64,000 bases of DNA from Perkinsus chesapeaki ATCC PRA-425 (Eukaryota; Protista; Perkinsozoa): NCBI GenBank assembly GCA_013115145.1, contig JAAPAO010000015.1:1-64000 (forward strand), in the 5' to 3' direction. The position numbers and the translations under genes are program-made. Shown here piece after piece: positions 690 through 11,837 of this stretch (within the stretch, counting starts at the first letter, position 1; each line of letters starts with the position of its first letter). The notes beneath the pieces are model-generated. The model was not told the origin of the DNA and made no database searches. It was given only the letters and a program-made list of their open reading frames with translations.

Positions 690-1310
690 TTATCCTACAA
701 GAATAAGCCTCGCTACAGCTGCATAAGCATCAACACGTCCGAATGGGAGAGTAACTTTTCCAGTCACATCCTTGAGGCCCTTCTTGGCGGTATCCTTGAG
801 AATGTTCTTCACGTCACGAGAAGACAGACCGGGTGCAATACTGTAGAGTATCGCAGCAACACCAGCGATAATCGACGCCGCTGCCGATGTTCCTCCGAAT
901 TCCGGATACGTTTTATCCCTGCCCGTAGTAACGATGTCAACGCCTGGTGCAGCGATGTCAACATAGTCAGCGAAACTCGATAGCTCGGACAACCTCATCC
1001 TCACCTGCTCGGTTGCCGCGACACATAGCATTCCATTAAGTTCTGTAGTCAGAGCACAAGGGAACCTTTCGTTGATGGTAGTGTTACTTCCTGTATTCCC
1101 AGCAATAACTATCATAAGTATGCCCGTCTTGTCAGCTTCCCTGAGCTTTTCAATAAACAACGGCCTCTCTAGCTCGGTTGAGAAAGGCATGATCAGCATT
1201 TTGATGCCTTTTCCTTTCTGGTCGCGGATGGAGTAGTCGATCGCGAGAGACTCCATCTGCTCCGTGAAATATTTACCAACAGAAATGGGCTAAATATTTA
1301 CAAGGTCCAA
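690..1310 (-). pseudogene. 5'-truncated subtilisin (S8) copy A
   Basis: C-terminal half only (AGN oxyanion motif, DIAAPG, GTSAAAS). The paralogous ATG codon in 'SIMPISVG' is an in-frame TAG at 1290-1292. Homology stops at ~1310, so the catalytic Asp and His are missing. Confidence 0.85.
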
Positions 1311-1390
1311 TGTCATAATCCGCGAAATTGATTTCCATATCCGACCCCTACCCCGAAAATGATCCTCCTTATTCGCAAAAAAGATTCACT

Positions 1391-1984: not shown

Positions 1985-2301
1985 TAAGCCTGAGATCAAC
2001 GATAATAACCAGTTATTAAAGAGAGCGTCAACGCATGCTCCATAGGGCTACTGGACACGCAACAGACCAACTATAAAAAACGAATGGTAATCATTCGTTG
2101 GTTCTAGATAAGCCTCTACGAAGTCAACTATGTTAACATGCCCCTGAGTTATGGGTCATGGTTCATTGACTTGTGGAAATAATAGCGCTATTAACTGCAA
2201 TATGAATGACCGATGATCTTCATCAGAGCATACATACTGCTACGGTGCTGACTAAGCAGTATACAGTATAAGCGTATATCATAGGTCACTTATGATAGGT
2301 G
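1985..2301. repeat. Duplicated 3' flank of subtilisin B (near-identical to 4318-4633), containing a relic of the ARFRP1 5' end
   Basis: About 315 bp are nearly identical between the two copies. The block AACCAGTTATTAAAGAGA...ATGCTC...AGGGYTACTGGACA...TATAAAAAA also matches 17062-17140. Confidence 0.85.
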
Positions 2302-3297
2302 TTATGGGATTAGCTTTGCCACAGCCGCATCAGCATCAACACGCCCGAACGGGAGACTAATCTTTCCAGTCACATCCTTAAGGCCCTTCTTGGCGGTATC
2401 CTTGAGAATTTTCTTCACGTCACGAGAAGACAGATCGGGTGCAATACTGTAGAGCATCGCAGCAACACCAGCGACAATTGACGCCGCTGGACACGTCCCT
2501 TGGGTACCTGTATACAGGTTATCCCCTTCGGTAGTGACAATCTTATACCCTGGTGCAGCGATGTCAACATAGTTAGCGAAACTCGAGAGCTCGGACAACC
2601 TCATCTTCACCTGTTCGGTTGCAGCGACACATAGCATTCCATTAAGTTCTGTAGTCAGAGCACAAGGGAACCTTTTTTTGATGGTAGTGTTACTTCCCCT
2701 GTTACCAGCAGTAACTATCATGAGTAAACCCGCCTTGTCAGCTTCCCTGAGCTTTCTAATAAACGAAGGCCTCTCTACTTCGCCTGAGAACGGCATGATT
2801 AGTATTTTGATACCTTTTCCTTCCTTGTTGCGGATGGCGTAGTCGACAGCTAGAGACTCAGTCTGTTCCGTGAAGTCTCTACCAACAGAGATGGGCATAA
2901 TGCTTACGAGGTCCATAACACCGGCTAAACCAATAGAGTTGTTGATCGTGGCACCAAGGATACCAGCCATAGCGGTCCCATGCCCAATTTCGTCGTCAGT
3001 ATCACTGTTGCGCTTCACCACATCGTAGCCCTCGACAAGGTTACCAACTAGATCGGGGTGGTCCTTTTTCACCCCAGTGTCTACGAGTGCCACAATAACT
3101 CTGTGCCTCTCCACTCTGGTTGATGCAAGACGCTTCCAAGCTCCCGGAAGGTTGATGGCTTCCATGTATGGTTCCTGATACAAGTAGAGAGGGTCGTTCA
3201 CAGGAAGGGAATTACCAGCATAAGATAGACCTTCAGCGATCCTCATAGCCATTGCCGCTGTAAATAAGAAGGAGTATTTGTGGAACCTTTTCACCAT
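2302..3297 (-). CDS. Subtilisin-like S8 protein B with Cys nucleophile (GTCPAAS), no evident prodomain
   Basis: Intact 331-aa intronless ORF with VNDP, VDTG (Asp), GHGT (His), AGN (oxyanion Asn) and DIAAPG; the nucleophile codon at 2492-2494 is TGT. Confidence 0.92.
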   Translation of the reverse strand: MVKRFHKYSFLFTAAMAMRIAEGLSYAGNSLPVNDPLYLYQEPYMEAINLPGAWKRLASTRVERHRVIVALVDTGVKKDHPDLVGNLVEGYDVVKRNSDTDDEIGHGTAMAGILGATINNSIGLAGVMDLVSIMPISVGRDFTEQTESLAVDYAIRNKEGKGIKILIMPFSGEVERPSFIRKLREADKAGLLMIVTAGNRGSNTTIKKRFPCALTTELNGMLCVAATEQVKMRLSELSSFANYVDIAAPGYKIVTTEGDNLYTGTQGTCPAASIVAGVAAMLYSIAPDLSSRDVKKILKDTAKKGLKDVTGKISLPFGRVDADAAVAKLIP

Positions 3298-4317
3298 ATA
3301 CCAAAAGAAAGAGCCTTGAAATTTTCAAGTTGAAAATAGAACACCATTCTACGGTATGCCCACAAACTTGTAGGGTCATGACTCGCGGCTCACAAGGTTT
3401 TCTTCGAAGGAGCCCTCCAATAACCCTGGCTCCCGAACGGCTATGCTCGCTCTTGAGTTCTCGGCTTCACACGAATGGACTGTTGATGAGATGTCAAGTT
3501 AAGAAGTCAACTCGGTAAAGTTGAAAGATTTTCACGAGCCGTAATCGCACTTGAAAATGCTAAAATGCCACCGAAAACTGACCTGACTTCTGGTGCAGAC
3601 TTTGCGCGTGTCTCTACTGTAGCAGTAGTATACTCTTGTGCGTTGGATGAACGGTGAGAGAGACTAGGGAACTGTGATTCGACGATTAAGGGGATGTTCC
3701 GCTTTGTCGAGCTTAATCCTAACGAGGCCCAAGGAGGGAACTTTGCACGCTGGTGATCAAGGATGAAAACTTCTTCAGAAATCTTCGGTATCTTGCACAG
3801 CGCTCGGCAGACACTGCCGGAATTGTACAGGAGGCTCTCCTGAATTCCTGTTCTCTTGGGAAGAGCCGGAGGTCGGAAGTTTCACATGACAGTAAAAGCT
3901 AACAAGGATGATGAAGAAGAGCAATTGAATCGACGAATGAGTTTTTGTTGTATGAGCTTTGCTGTCGGGGACTGACTCAACCGCCGTTCTCCAACGAGGC
4001 GTAAGTTCAACCCACTTTGTACAGTTCGAGCTTCAATCATCTGCCTTGAAATCAGGCGGCGTCGCGCTCCTATTCCAGAGATTATATCGGTAATGTTTTG
4101 TCGGAAAAATGTTCTGAGCCTTTGTCATAGAATTCAACTGGCAAGCTACTGTGAAATCGATGTCGAACCTAGCAGGGTACTGCTCCACATTTTCTTGCCT
4201 TTCCACTCCCATTGTGTTGACGTCTCTGCGCTACACACGAGAGATGCAATGTTGTCCACCGGTCTATATAAGGACCTCACCGGACCCGACTATGCGGGCA
4301 TTTGGAGCTCATAGTCT

Positions 4318-4633
4318 GAGCCTGAGATCAACGGTAACGACCAGTTATTAAAGAGAGGATCAACGCATGCTCCATAGGGCTACTTGACAACGCAATAGAC
4401 CAACTATAAAAAACGAGTGTAATCATTCCTTGGATCTAGATAACCCTCTACGAAGTCAACTATGTTAACATGCCCCTGAGTTATGGGTCATGGGTCATTG
4501 ACTTGTGGAAATAATAGCGCTATTAACTGCAATATGAATGACCGATGATCTTCATCAGAGCATACATACTGCTACGGTGCTGACTAACCAGTATACAGTA
4601 TAAGCGTATATCATAGGTCACTTATGATAGGTG
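4318..4633. repeat. Duplicated 3' flank of subtilisin C (copy of 1985-2301)
   Basis: Direct sequence comparison. Confidence 0.85.
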
Positions 4634-5662
4634 TTATGGGATTAGCTTTGCCACAGCCGCATCAGCATCAACACGCCCGAACGGGAGACTAATCTTTCCA
4701 GTCACATCCTTGAGGCCCTTCTTGGTGGTATCCTTGAGAATTTTCTTCACGTCACGAGAAGACAGATCGGGTGCAATACTGTAGAGCATCGCAGCAACAC
4801 CAGCGATAATTGACGCCGCTGAACATGTTCCTCTAACTTCCGTATACATGTAATCCCTATCCGTAGTAACGATGTCAACGCCTGGTGCAGCGATGTCAAC
4901 ATAGTTAGCGTAACTCGAGAGCTCGGACAACCTCATCTTCACCTGCTCGGTTGCAGCGACACATATCATTCCATTAAGCTCTGTAGTCAGAGCACAAGGG
5001 AACTTTTTGTTGATGGTAGTGTTACTTCCTCTGTTACCAGCAGTAACAATCATAAGTATACCCGCCTTGTCAGCTTCTCTAAGCTTCTTGATAAACAACG
5101 GCCTCTCTAGCTCGGTTGAGAAAGGCATGATCAGCATTTTGATACCTTTTCCTTTCTGGTTGCGGATGGAGTAGTCGACAGCGAGATACTCGGTCAACTC
5201 CGTGAATTCTCTACCAACAGAAATGGGCATAATGCTTACGAGGTCCATAACACCGGCTAAACCAATAGAATTGTTGATCTTGGCACCAAGGATACCAGCC
5301 ATAGAGGTACCATGCCCAGTCTGATCATCAGTACTACTATTGCGCATGACCACATTGTAACCCTCGACAACGTTACCAACTAGATCGGGGTGGTCCTTCT
5401 TCACCCCTGAGTCTACGAGTGCTAAAGTAACTTTGTGTCTATCCACTCTGGTTGAAGTCAGACGTCTCCATGCTCCTGGAACTCGGATTGCTTTCATATA
5501 TGGTGCCTGATGCAAGTAGAGAGGGTCGTTCACATTACCAGCAGAAAACAGGGTTTCGTCGTTGGGCTTACTAGCCTTTGCCGCCATCATTAAGAAGGAG
5601 AGTTTGTGAAGCCTCTTCAACAGACACCAAGAGGGAGCTGAGGTTTGAGCACAATGCACCAT
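4634..5662 (-). CDS. Subtilisin-like S8 protein C with Cys nucleophile (GTCSAAS); start codon uncertain
   Basis: Intact ORF with VDSG, GHGT, AGN and DIAAPG; the nucleophile codon at 4823-4825 is TGT. The ATG used by copies B and E is CTG here; ATGs exist upstream (5662) and downstream (LMMAAK). Confidence 0.88.
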   Translation of the reverse strand: MVHCAQTSAPSWCLLKRLHKLSFLMMAAKASKPNDETLFSAGNVNDPLYLHQAPYMKAIRVPGAWRRLTSTRVDRHKVTLALVDSGVKKDHPDLVGNVVEGYNVVMRNSSTDDQTGHGTSMAGILGAKINNSIGLAGVMDLVSIMPISVGREFTELTEYLAVDYSIRNQKGKGIKMLIMPFSTELERPLFIKKLREADKAGILMIVTAGNRGSNTTINKKFPCALTTELNGMICVAATEQVKMRLSELSSYANYVDIAAPGVDIVTTDRDYMYTEVRGTCSAASIIAGVAAMLYSIAPDLSSRDVKKILKDTTKKGLKDVTGKISLPFGRVDADAAVAKLIP

Positions 5663-6699: not shown

Positions 6700-8048
6700 A
6701 TGACCTACCCCACATCGGTCGCTCTATTGCTCAACCTGCTATCACTGACCGGTGCTCTCCAGAACCGTATTATAATAGCGGCTACGCAGGACAGCATAAC
6801 CTTGGATGCGCGTAAGGTGCCTCTTATGATGGCTGATGCCGGCGCGAGAACTGTATCAAGCCGTGAAGACCTCTTATGTGAGGAATGCTTATTGAACTCA
6901 GACATGGTTGAAGACCTCGCGGCCATCGGAATACAAATTGTGGATCCGAGTTGTGGGGCAACAGTTACCGAAGTGCAAAGCTACCTCAAGAAGGCCGAAG
7001 CCGTGCTAAACATTGTAGTTAAATGTGATCCAGATCTGGAGTTCTATGTCGAGCCACTACCTACGGAATTTTCAGGTCGAGGACAACAATCTGAATGTAC
7101 TGGAGGCAACCCTAGACTTGGTACGAATGGCCCAGGGTCCTCTTGTCAACAAAGCTTGGAGATTATACGCGTCGGTCCCGCATGGCAAAAGTTGAAGCAG
7201 GCCAACAAAACGGTTGAAGTTGTGCTGGCCCTTCTTGATGGTGGAGTGGACACAAAACATCCCGACCTTATTAATCAGTTCTGGAAGAATCCGAAGGATG
7301 GTTCCATCGGTTATAATTTTGCCTCCAACACTACGTACATAACCGATTTCAACGGGCATGGTACCCACTGTGCGGGAATAGCCGGGGCTCAGATCAATAA
7401 CAGTCTTGGAGTCGCTGGTGCAGCTGATAATATCAAACTAATGATATTACAGATTGTAGATGGTGATTACCCTGGGATGATACATGGAACCATAGGCGAT
7501 ATAATACGAGCACTAAATTTTGCTGTCGAACATGGTGCGGCAGTTTCCTTGAGCTCGTATGCTTTCCACAAGAAAGCTGATACGCTTAAGCAGGCCATTG
7601 TAAACGCAGCCAGTAAAGGGCATGTTTATGTTACGGCAGCGGGAAACGCTGGTTCTTCTGTAGACAAGGTGCCGGTCTACCCTTGTGTTTATGCTCCTGA
7701 TATCCCATCTATGCTATGTGCTGCGGCTTCCACTTCGGACAAGGACGCGCCGATTGATGTCGCCTCTTTTTCTAATGTTGGCTCTATGGTCCATATAGCA
7801 GCTCCTGGTGTCCAGATCCTTTCTACGTACTCTACTGGGAGATACTGGCGCCAAAGTGGTGCGTCAATGGCGGCCCCCATATCGCCGCTGTTGCTAGCCT
7901 AGTTGCCTCTCTTGACCTGGAAGGTCAGCAAGTAGCAGACGCTATTATAACGACAAGTAAAAAGATTAACAGTTCTCGTGCCTCGAATTTGGGTGAGTTG
8001 GATGCTCTAGGAGCGGTGTCTGTCGCGCTCTTGCTAGGGGAGAGTTGA
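6700..8048 (+). pseudogene. Canonical prepro-subtilisin D with a -1 frameshift just after the catalytic Ser (or a homopolymer sequencing error)
   Basis: Signal peptide, ~140-aa pro-region, LDGG, HGTHCAG, AGN and GASMAAP. A run of 5 C at 7874-7878 needs 6; restoring one C gives HIAAVASLVASLD...GELDALGAV...ES* ending at 8048. Confidence 0.85.
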
Positions 8049-10823: not shown

Positions 10824-11837
10824 TTAGTATCGTAGATGATATGAAATGGCCTTTGCTACTGCCGCATCAGCATCAACAAGCCCGAACGGGAGCGTGACTT
10901 TCCCAGTAGCATCCTTGAGGCCCTTCTTGGCGGTATCCTTGAGAATGTTCTTCACATCACGAGAAGACAGACCGGGTGCAATACTGTAGAGCATCGCAGC
11001 AACACCAGCGATAATTGACGCCGCTGAAGATGTTCCTTCACCTTCCGAATACGTCTTATCCCTAACCGTAGTAACGATGCCAACGCCTGGTGCAGCGATG
11101 TCAACATAGTTAGCGAAACTCGAGAGCTCGGACAACCTCATCTTCACCTGCTCGGTTGCAGCGACACATAGCATTCCATTAAGTTCTGTAGTCAGAGCAC
11201 AAGGGAACCTTTTGTTGATGGTGGTGTTGCTCCCTGTATTCCCAGCAGTGACTATCATAAGTATGCCCGCCTTGTCAGCTTCCCTGAGCTTTTCAACGAA
11301 CAACGGCTTATCTTTTTCGCCTGAGAATGCCATGATTAGTATTTTGATATCTTTTCCTTCCGTGTTGCGGATGGCGTAGTCGACAGCTAGAGACTCAGTC
11401 TTTTCCCTGAAATGTATACCAACAGAAATGGGCATAATGTTTACAAAATCCATAACACCGGCTGAACCGACAGAGTTGTTGATCTTGGCACCAAGGACAC
11501 CAGCCATAGAGGTACCATGCCCAGTCTGATCATCAGTACTACTATTGCGCATGACCACATTGTAGCCCTCGACAAGGTTACCAACTAGATCGGGGTGGTC
11601 CTTCTCCACCCCTGAGTCTACGAGTCCCACAGTAACTCTGTGTCTCTCCACTCTGGTTGATGTCAAGCGCCTCCAAGCACTTGGAACATTTATTGCTTCC
11701 ATATATGATGCCTGCTTCGAGTATAAAGGGTCGTTGACAGGCGGTACACCCCCAGCATAAGATAGACTTTCGTTGGCGGACCTGATCGCCACTGACGCGG
11801 TGATTGAGAGGGAGAGTTTGTGAAGCTTTTGCCACAT
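10824..11837 (-). CDS. Subtilisin-like S8 protein E with Ser nucleophile (GTSSAAS), no evident prodomain
   Basis: Intact ORF with VDSG, GHGT and AGN; the nucleophile codon at 11028-11030 is TCT. The ATG at 11837 aligns with the copy B start. Confidence 0.9.
   Translation of the reverse strand: MWQKLHKLSLSITASVAIRSANESLSYAGGVPPVNDPLYSKQASYMEAINVPSAWRRLTSTRVERHRVTVGLVDSGVEKDHPDLVGNLVEGYNVVMRNSSTDDQTGHGTSMAGVLGAKINNSVGSAGVMDFVNIMPISVGIHFREKTESLAVDYAIRNTEGKDIKILIMAFSGEKDKPLFVEKLREADKAGILMIVTAGNTGSNTTINKRFPCALTTELNGMLCVAATEQVKMRLSELSSFANYVDIAAPGVGIVTTVRDKTYSEGEGTSSAASIIAGVAAMLYSIAPGLSSRDVKNILKDTAKKGLKDATGKVTLPFGLVDADAAVAKAISYHLRY

Follow-up and report, generated by a model that had tools for sequence, protein, structure and literature searches.

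Cysteine at the catalytic position of two subtilase copies

The first 12 kb of a 64,000-nucleotide stretch of Perkinsus chesapeaki, a clam parasite (assembly GCA_013115145.1, contig JAAPAO010000015.1, positions 1 to 64,000, hereafter the window), hold five copies of an S8 subtilase gene, designated A to E. In two of these, B and C, the codon of the catalytic serine encodes cysteine, and copy B at least may well specify a working thiol-subtilase with altered chemistry. A subtilisin with a Cys nucleophile has for 60 years been a laboratory construct, and it is the basis of commercial peptide ligases. The Ser to Cys swap described here is natural, recurrent and confined to a Perkinsus family with a ligase-like active-site helix. 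Within a limited library search, no paper describing a natural thiol-subtilase was found.

Copy B (2302..3297, minus strand) is an intact single-exon open reading frame (ORF) of 331 amino acids, whose annotated product of 316 amino acids begins at an internal Met. Its nucleophile codon TGT lies at 2491..2493 and corresponds to residue 269 of the ORF, the equivalent of S221 in subtilisin BPN'; on the minus strand the motif reads GGG ACG TGT CCA GCG GCG TCA, or G-T-C-P-A-A-S. Copy C (4634..5662, minus strand, counted from an upstream ATG at 5660-5662) is an open ORF with an annotated product of 318 amino acids from a later Met. Its TGT codon at 4823..4825, equivalent to the codon of the catalytic Ser, stands in GGA ACA TGT TCA GCG GCG TCA (GTCSAAS). 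The Ser-nucleophile sister, copy E (10824..11837, minus strand), reads GTSSAAS with TCT at 11028-11030. An earlier sequence-only reading had singled out both TGT codons and the TCT of E; all three stand, and only its position for the codon of B (2492-2494) was one base off. It had also described both Cys ORFs as intact, which holds for B; C is open and has lost the conserved start codon, as detailed below.

The HMMER alignment of B to the thermitase motif GTSMATPHVAG puts the Cys of B opposite the catalytic Ser, its Pro opposite Met222 and its Ser opposite Pro225, and the GTC-S-A-A-S of copy C aligns likewise to thermitase GTS-M-A-T-P. The equivalences S221C, P225S and, in B, M222P had been proposed from the sequence and are borne out by this alignment, as is the retention in both copies of the Asp (DTG/DSG), His (GHGT) and oxyanion Asn (AGN) motifs. 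All three of B, C and E match the subtilase profile PF00082, with E values from 1e-31 to 1e-36 (1.7e-34 for B) and scores of 119.9 bits for B and 108.8 bits for C against a curated cut-off of 21.8; they have no other Pfam match. An AlphaFold model of B (predicted local distance difference test, 94.8) superimposes on thermitase 1thm with a Foldseek template-modelling (TM) score of 0.91 (E = 2.6e-25). Thus the family profile holds for B and C and the subtilisin alpha/beta fold for the model of B, and both copies combine Cys221 with a small residue other than Pro at 225, as subtiligase does. The Asp-His-Ser triad is broken in both by the replacement of Ser with Cys. Neither copy fits the description of an S8 pseudoprotease, since Cys is itself a nucleophile and the Asp, His and Asn are in place. 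B and C are members of the S8 family by homology and yet, strictly speaking, no serine peptidases.

Could the Cys codons be errors of sequencing or assembly, or rare somatic or allelic variants? The assembly is a draft, and a homopolymer frame shift in a third Cys copy, P0006, could be such an error. Against this, TGT occurs in two copies with differing neighbour codons, and the same substitution is found in the assembly of another species, P. marinus. In addition, contigs of two DNA samples from different studies (X1 2022 and X5 2020) carry no alternative letter at either Cys codon, and the same contigs do report variants at 2587-2623, 4742, 4911 and 5000. The agreement of the two samples makes a sequencing error unlikely, and we regard an artefact of any of these kinds as highly improbable. 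A loose contig end at 2478 (...RKGTSAASA, minus strand) was considered as a Ser allele and rejected, as it matches the paralogue P0010. The sequence-only reading had argued against error from the presence of the change in two copies; the DNA samples uphold its conclusion.

B and C share one origin

B and C are 87 % identical overall. Over a tract at 2110..2499 (minus strand; counterpart 4442-4831), which comprises 3' flank together with the final 190 nt of the coding sequence (CDS), the identity is 98 %, with about 8 mismatches in 390 nt as compared with 8-12 per 30 nt in the adjoining 60 nt and about 13 % over the whole CDS. The Cys codon marks the inner edge of this tract. Since it falls inside the shared near-identical sequence, the Cys of B and that of C represent one event, and the idea that the two arose independently was rejected. 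The duplication is also seen in the repeat listing (repeat D6, 97 %). The duplication extends farther 3' of the two genes, where 1980-2110 and 4312-4442 are 90-97 % identical; with its 2,332 bp the repeat unit accordingly takes in flank as well as coding sequence. The four window copies A, B, C and E are recombination mosaics and yield no firm branching order.

Cysteine is the only replacement in a short subtilase family

B, C and E are part of a family that has expanded in P. chesapeaki to about 30 short (300-340 amino acids) thermitase-like S8 paralogues, which are mostly single-exon and have no prodomain, and a similar expansion of short S8 genes is present in P. marinus. The proteins nearest to B, C and E all come from P. 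chesapeaki, followed by those of P. marinus. The active-site columns were read from a hidden Markov model alignment of 62 domains of this Perkinsus short family (P0001-P0035, P0262-P0288) and 294 other S8 domains. At the nucleophile the short family has Ser in 58 domains and Cys in 4, so that Cys is the only replacement there. The other S8 domains have Ser in 281 and Cys in none, and their non-Ser residues are Pro (5), Ala (4), Leu, Asp, Gln and Gly. That the site of the short family is only ever occupied by Ser or Cys indicates that selection keeps a nucleophile there. A single change in a TCT codon can lead to six other amino acids; Cys is one of these and takes a transversion. Neutral decay would give Cys in all of two or three changes with a probability of roughly 0.03 to 0.005, the events being taken as independent.

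The four Cys copies are B, C, P0006 of P. chesapeaki and P0122 of P. marinus, and each of them retains D, H and N. The search for further GTC nucleophiles that the sequence-only reading had called for thus added two. P0006 (FOL47_007618, contig JAAPAO010000456.1) reads GTCPASA with the codon TGC. The gene of P0122 (XP_002775635.1) is intact and consists of a single exon; it encodes a strong signal peptide and the motif GTCGATG, with the codon TGT. Its locus (L129 4001-5008, GG679899.1) and that of P0262 (L130 4001-5005, GG681723.1) have flanks that are 96.5 % identical over 8 kb. The two genes differ at the nucleophile, TGT in P0122 and TCA in P0262, and 8 nonsynonymous differences between them, including multi-nucleotide codon changes, are bunched in codons 254-280. 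They are alleles or very recent duplicates, and the cluster in codons 254-280 looks like a patch imported by gene conversion.

Beyond Perkinsus, the pattern GTC-M-[AS]-x-P-H-V-x-G gave 0 matches in 185,579 prokaryote species genomes, as compared with at least 120 loci (88 among the matches listed) for a control pattern with a TCN Ser in the same scan. In a metagenome scan the GTC pattern matched once, in a gene whose parts lie in three different frames. The family also has other catalytic deviants, namely D32E in P0016 and N155H in P0028 and P0033 of P. marinus. A fully dead paralogue in the P. chesapeaki genome, P0156 (FOL47_004194), reads G/N/D/P at the four catalytic sites.

The active-site helix of the short family

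Position 222 in the short family is occupied by Pro (21 domains), Gly (16), Ala (15), Ser (5), Val (2), Glu (2) or Met (1), and position 225 by Ala (52), Ser (6), Gly (2) or Pro (2), that is, by Ala or Ser in 58 of the 62. The other S8 domains have Met222 in 210 and Pro225 in 246 of the 294. A residue other than Met at 222 together with Ala or Ser at 225 is therefore ancestral to the whole Perkinsus short family, nearly all members of which keep the Ser nucleophile. The sequence-only reading had listed S221C, P225S and, for B, M222P in a way that implied a ligase set in the Cys copies; with the states of 222 and 225 spread over the family, the three substitutions do not form a co-evolved ligase set.

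The same reading had stated that subtiligase is S221C/P225A and that M222P entered later ligases. This is correct, the latter being peptiligase and omniligase (PMC7921005). In engineered subtilisins P225A or P225N shortens the helix and moves Cys221 by 0.5 Å, making room for the sulphur; P225A restores the activity of thiol-subtilisin; and Ser225 beat Ala225 in the ratio of synthesis to hydrolysis (PMC7921005). By analogy, the helix of the short family may constitute a permissive background for a Cys nucleophile, and a permissive helix would explain both the recurrence of the Ser to Cys change here and its near absence in canonical S8 enzymes. The repeated arrival at Cys, only on a helix already without Pro225 and Met222, amounts to a natural experiment on the epistasis known to the engineers. 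The oxidation-labile Met222 is absent in 61 of the 62 short-family domains, as in bleach-stable engineered subtilisins, and its loss could be an adaptation to the oxidative burst of the host.

The engineered series from subtiligase through peptiligase to omniligase (BPN' S221C/P225A, then M222P/L217H, then A225N) has in common with B and C the Cys221, a small residue other than Pro at 225 (Ser in B and C), the fold and the Asp, His and Asn residues, and with B also Pro222. B and C differ in being natural, in that their 222 and 225 states predate the Cys, in having only about 26 % identity to BPN' or Carlsberg-type entries, in a Cys pair (FPC...LCVAAT) and in the want of a prodomain. Thiol-subtilisin, obtained in 1966 by chemical conversion of Ser221 to Cys, is nearly dead as an amidase. 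It has the same single-atom change at the nucleophile, O to S, as B and C, and it keeps Pro225 and Met222, whereas the Perkinsus background has neither.

Thermitase 1thm is the best sequence match to B (E = 3e-30) and, by fold, one of the best two (TM 0.91, scaled to target length), the other being deseasin 3vv3, whose Foldseek E value is lower. Thermitase has Ser, Met222, Pro225 and an I9 prodomain. In contrast, no I9 prodomain was found by Pfam in B, C or E, in which a signal-like N-terminus leads straight into the catalytic domain; the HMMER alignment with residue 4 of mature thermitase begins about 33 residues into B. In Clostridioides difficile, CspC and CspA are S8 paralogues retained in the genome with a changed catalytic residue (PMC7200643). 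CspC and CspA lost the nucleophile function outright, whereas in B and C a different nucleophile has taken the place of Ser and the other triad residues remain.

Cysteine between the two serine codon sets

Among 24 genes of the family, the codon of the nucleophile is TCA in 13, TCT in 5, TGT in 3, and TCG, TGC and AGT in one each. All codons of P. chesapeaki other than TCN fall in a single clade of six genes, whose support is 100/98 from proteins and, with the nucleophile codon left out, 100/100 from DNA. Its members are P0004 with AGT (Ser), P0006 with TGC (Cys), B and C with TGT (Cys), E with TCT and A with TCG (both Ser). The 18 other sampled genes, 17 P. chesapeaki paralogues and P0262 of P. 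marinus, all use TCN. Hence a single monophyletic group carries TCN, TGY and AGY codons at the same homologous position, and the nearest relative, P0004, encodes its nucleophile Ser by AGT. The AGT of P0004, the third and fourth Cys copies, the missing prodomain and the lost start of C all go beyond the sequence-only reading.

TCN and AGY codons cannot be interchanged in one step, and the bridges between them are Cys (TGY) and Thr (ACN). Brenner reportedly put forward the idea of two serines in 1988, with active-site serines and a bridge between the codon sets, and Rogozin is said to have described in 2016 switches between serine codon sets via harmful intermediates as a general phenomenon. 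The likeness to the Perkinsus genes lies in the presence of both serine codon sets and of Cys bridge codons in one clade. The difference is that in those studies the intermediates are deduced, whereas Perkinsus paralogues carry an extant Cys state. The family is thus an extant and testable case of a debated route between serine codon sets at a catalytic residue.

Which state did the ancestor of the six genes have? Parsimony requires 5 steps with a Cys ancestor as compared with 6-7 with a Ser ancestor. A one-site Markov model gives a Cys ancestor a probability of 0.5 with free rates and of 0.8-1.0 if the change from Ser to Cys is rare, values that hinge on the assumed rates. An exclusive Cys clade of B, C and P0006 was marginally rejected by the approximately unbiased (AU) test (p = 0.048), which did not reject B and C as sisters (p = 0.47). 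In either direction, Cys arose at least twice or persisted long. It is conceivable, and we propose it only tentatively, that the six genes descend from a working thiol-subtilase, that selection kept Cys in B and C and until recently in P0006, and that Ser was regained twice, as TCT in E and A and as AGT in P0004. If this were true, the family would hold the first living example of Brenner's Cys intermediate at a protease active site and the first natural S8 enzymes using a Cys-His-Asp triad, with possible acyl-transfer or inhibitor-evading properties of use to parasite and enzyme engineers alike.

Constraint on the Cys copies and variation of a loop

By the method of Nei and Gojobori, the ratio of nonsynonymous to synonymous rates (dN/dS) is 0.39 for B and C, 0.41 for B and E and 0.50 for C and E, and about 0.2 for comparisons with P0004. 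For P0006 and B it is 0.23 at a dS of about 1, which resembles Ser-Ser pairs of equal depth. Nonsynonymous to synonymous changes private to one copy, for which the neutral expectation is 3.26:1, number 36:30 in B (p = 7e-5), 30:21 in C (p = 0.004) and 49:28 in the Ser copy E (p = 0.007). These values suggest that B and C are under purifying selection and are constrained at least as much as their Ser sister. The sequence-only reading had proposed that a dN/dS near 1 would speak against function. B and C are indeed below the neutral value. As a decisive test, however, dN/dS was rejected, since remnant A behaves similarly and the copies are recombination mosaics.

A hypervariable loop precedes the nucleophile (2497..2547 in B, minus strand), at about positions 203-218 of BPN', where it borders the prime-side pockets. 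C and E, one of the six pairs compared, differ in this loop by 9 nonsynonymous and 0 synonymous changes, a pattern that is only suggestive (p = 0.011 as compared with the remainder of the gene). The loop of B is divergent at nonsynonymous and synonymous sites alike.

Weighing the explanations

The reading that we favor, in which B at least may well be functional, can be put as a sequence of steps. An ancestral helix without Met222 and Pro225 would have offered room for the larger sulphur, and the nucleophile Ser would then have changed to Cys. Selection would hold a nucleophile at the site while the codon in the six-gene clade shifted between the TCN, TGY and AGY sets, Cys lying a single step from either serine set. 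B and C would act by a Cys-His-Asp triad through a thioacyl-enzyme intermediate, and as compared with their Ser sisters they would hydrolyse amides less well and be relatively better at cleaving esters and transferring acyl groups. They would be altered yet working hydrolases of a protease array rather than dedicated ligases.

Several observations weigh against this reading. Engineered S221C/P225A subtilisins are very poor amidases (PMC7921005). A search for RNA of B and C gave one contig of 190 nt (5180-5369), which falls short of the Cys codon; it has 9 mismatches to C, from which B differs by 24 and E by 20, and this greater closeness to C is a hint that does not count as evidence of transcription. 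Copy C has CTG at 5621-5623 (minus strand) where B and E have their start ATG, so that its possible starts are the ATG 13 codons upstream (5660-5662) or one 11 codons downstream of the lost position, and B, E and P0006 all have a stronger hydrophobic signal-peptide core than its LSFLMMAAKA. The P0006 locus (L002 10230-10400) shifts frame at a T5/A6 run, and an annotated intron there masks the shift by cutting out 33 conserved codons, which all paralogues have as coding sequence; P0006 is either a pseudogene or carries an assembly indel. Two of the four Cys copies, P0006 and C, therefore look damaged. The four represent only two or three independent events, by which association statistics are inflated. 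As for constraint, the truncated remnant A gives a comparable ratio of private changes (20:13), and gene conversion, evident among the copies, can mimic it.

Much of this evidence also fits decay, a less probable account that we nevertheless take seriously. On this account the Cys copies would be intermediates that are tolerated, or duplicates in decay, within a large redundant family under turnover, crippled and without a function of their own; a slightly harmful Ser to Cys change would linger until Ser is restored, by way of TCT or by a further step to AGT, or until the copy is lost, and relaxed selection would leave the codon pattern as a side effect. The remnant A in the array, the lost start codon of C, the frame shift of P0006, the dN/dS of 0.4-0.5 among the window copies as compared with 0.2 against the outgroup, and the catalytic deviants P0016, P0028 and P0033 are all in line with it, as are the switches between serine codon sets via harmful intermediates reported to be general (Rogozin 2016, cited via PMC6872785). 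Relaxed selection should, however, also yield Pro, Phe, Thr, Ala or Tyr, whereas only Cys is seen in 62 domains. Nor would decay predict D, H and N to be intact in 4/4 Cys copies, the own branches of B and C to be significantly constrained and no less so than that of E, or an intact Cys gene to exist in a second species, P. marinus.

The sequence-only reading had offered two more specialized roles, decoy and dedicated ligase, which are possible and have no specific support. Bivalve hosts produce subtilisin inhibitors against Perkinsus proteases, and subtilisin variants at S221 still bind protein inhibitors, so low-activity Cys copies could bind the standard-mechanism inhibitors of the host and shield the active Ser paralogues. 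The intact binding cleft and fold in the model of B, and the hypervariable loop beside the active site, as for an arms-race surface, agree with such a decoy. Yet a decoy does not need a nucleophile and Ala or Gly would do, whereas only Cys is seen; and the Ser copy E is equally loop-variable. We consider this role unlikely. A dedicated natural peptide ligase or transpeptidase, with Cys221, Pro222 and Ser225 as an evolved ligase site, is if anything slightly more doubtful. The residues do match the solutions of subtiligase, peptiligase and omniligase (PMC7921005). Against the proposal, Pro222 and Ala or Ser at 225 are ancestral and shared with about 58 Ser paralogues, C has Ser and not Pro at 222, and outside the nucleophile nothing sets the Cys copies apart from E. 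Moreover, engineered ligases depend on activated esters as donors, and the window shows no sign of such a substrate or of a partner gene; between B and C, nothing convincing was found as a small Cys-rich partner ORF. Should the proteins prove active as thiol-subtilases, they would be ready-made scaffolds for ligase engineering and a new element in the encounter of Perkinsus proteases with bivalve inhibitors.

The array and its surroundings

The remnant A, the frame shift of P0006 and the start loss of C show that the genes are in birth-and-death turnover. The array is a fast-turnover one and its products are probably secreted. Copy A (693..1343, minus strand) is a 5'-truncated remnant in which the Asp and His regions are gone and an in-frame stop stands at the start; its nucleophile codon is TCG at 885-887. 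The homology of A begins at ...LDLVNI*PISV and leaves an ORF of 188 amino acids, with a dN/dS like that of the intact copies.

Copy D (6700..7902, plus strand) is a divergent S8 gene with the motif SGASMAAP and 32 % identity to E, and is mentioned here for context only. It has an N-terminal extension of about 170 amino acids and a more canonical motif in which Met, Pro and the Ser nucleophile are kept. Its ORF ends about 11 residues past the nucleophile, so that the gene probably either goes on beyond an intron or is truncated.

Elsewhere in the window, the 6 kb of the segment 40001-46000 stand out by a GC skew that is strongly positive (0.28-0.40); long ORFs are nearly absent there, and tandem repeats do not occur. 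Among the proteins of the representative library that match B best are giant ones (P0123, P0124, P0128, P0133, P0167 and others) of 1,000-5,400 amino acids, which have 2-8 subtilase domains each, several of them with dead catalytic residues.

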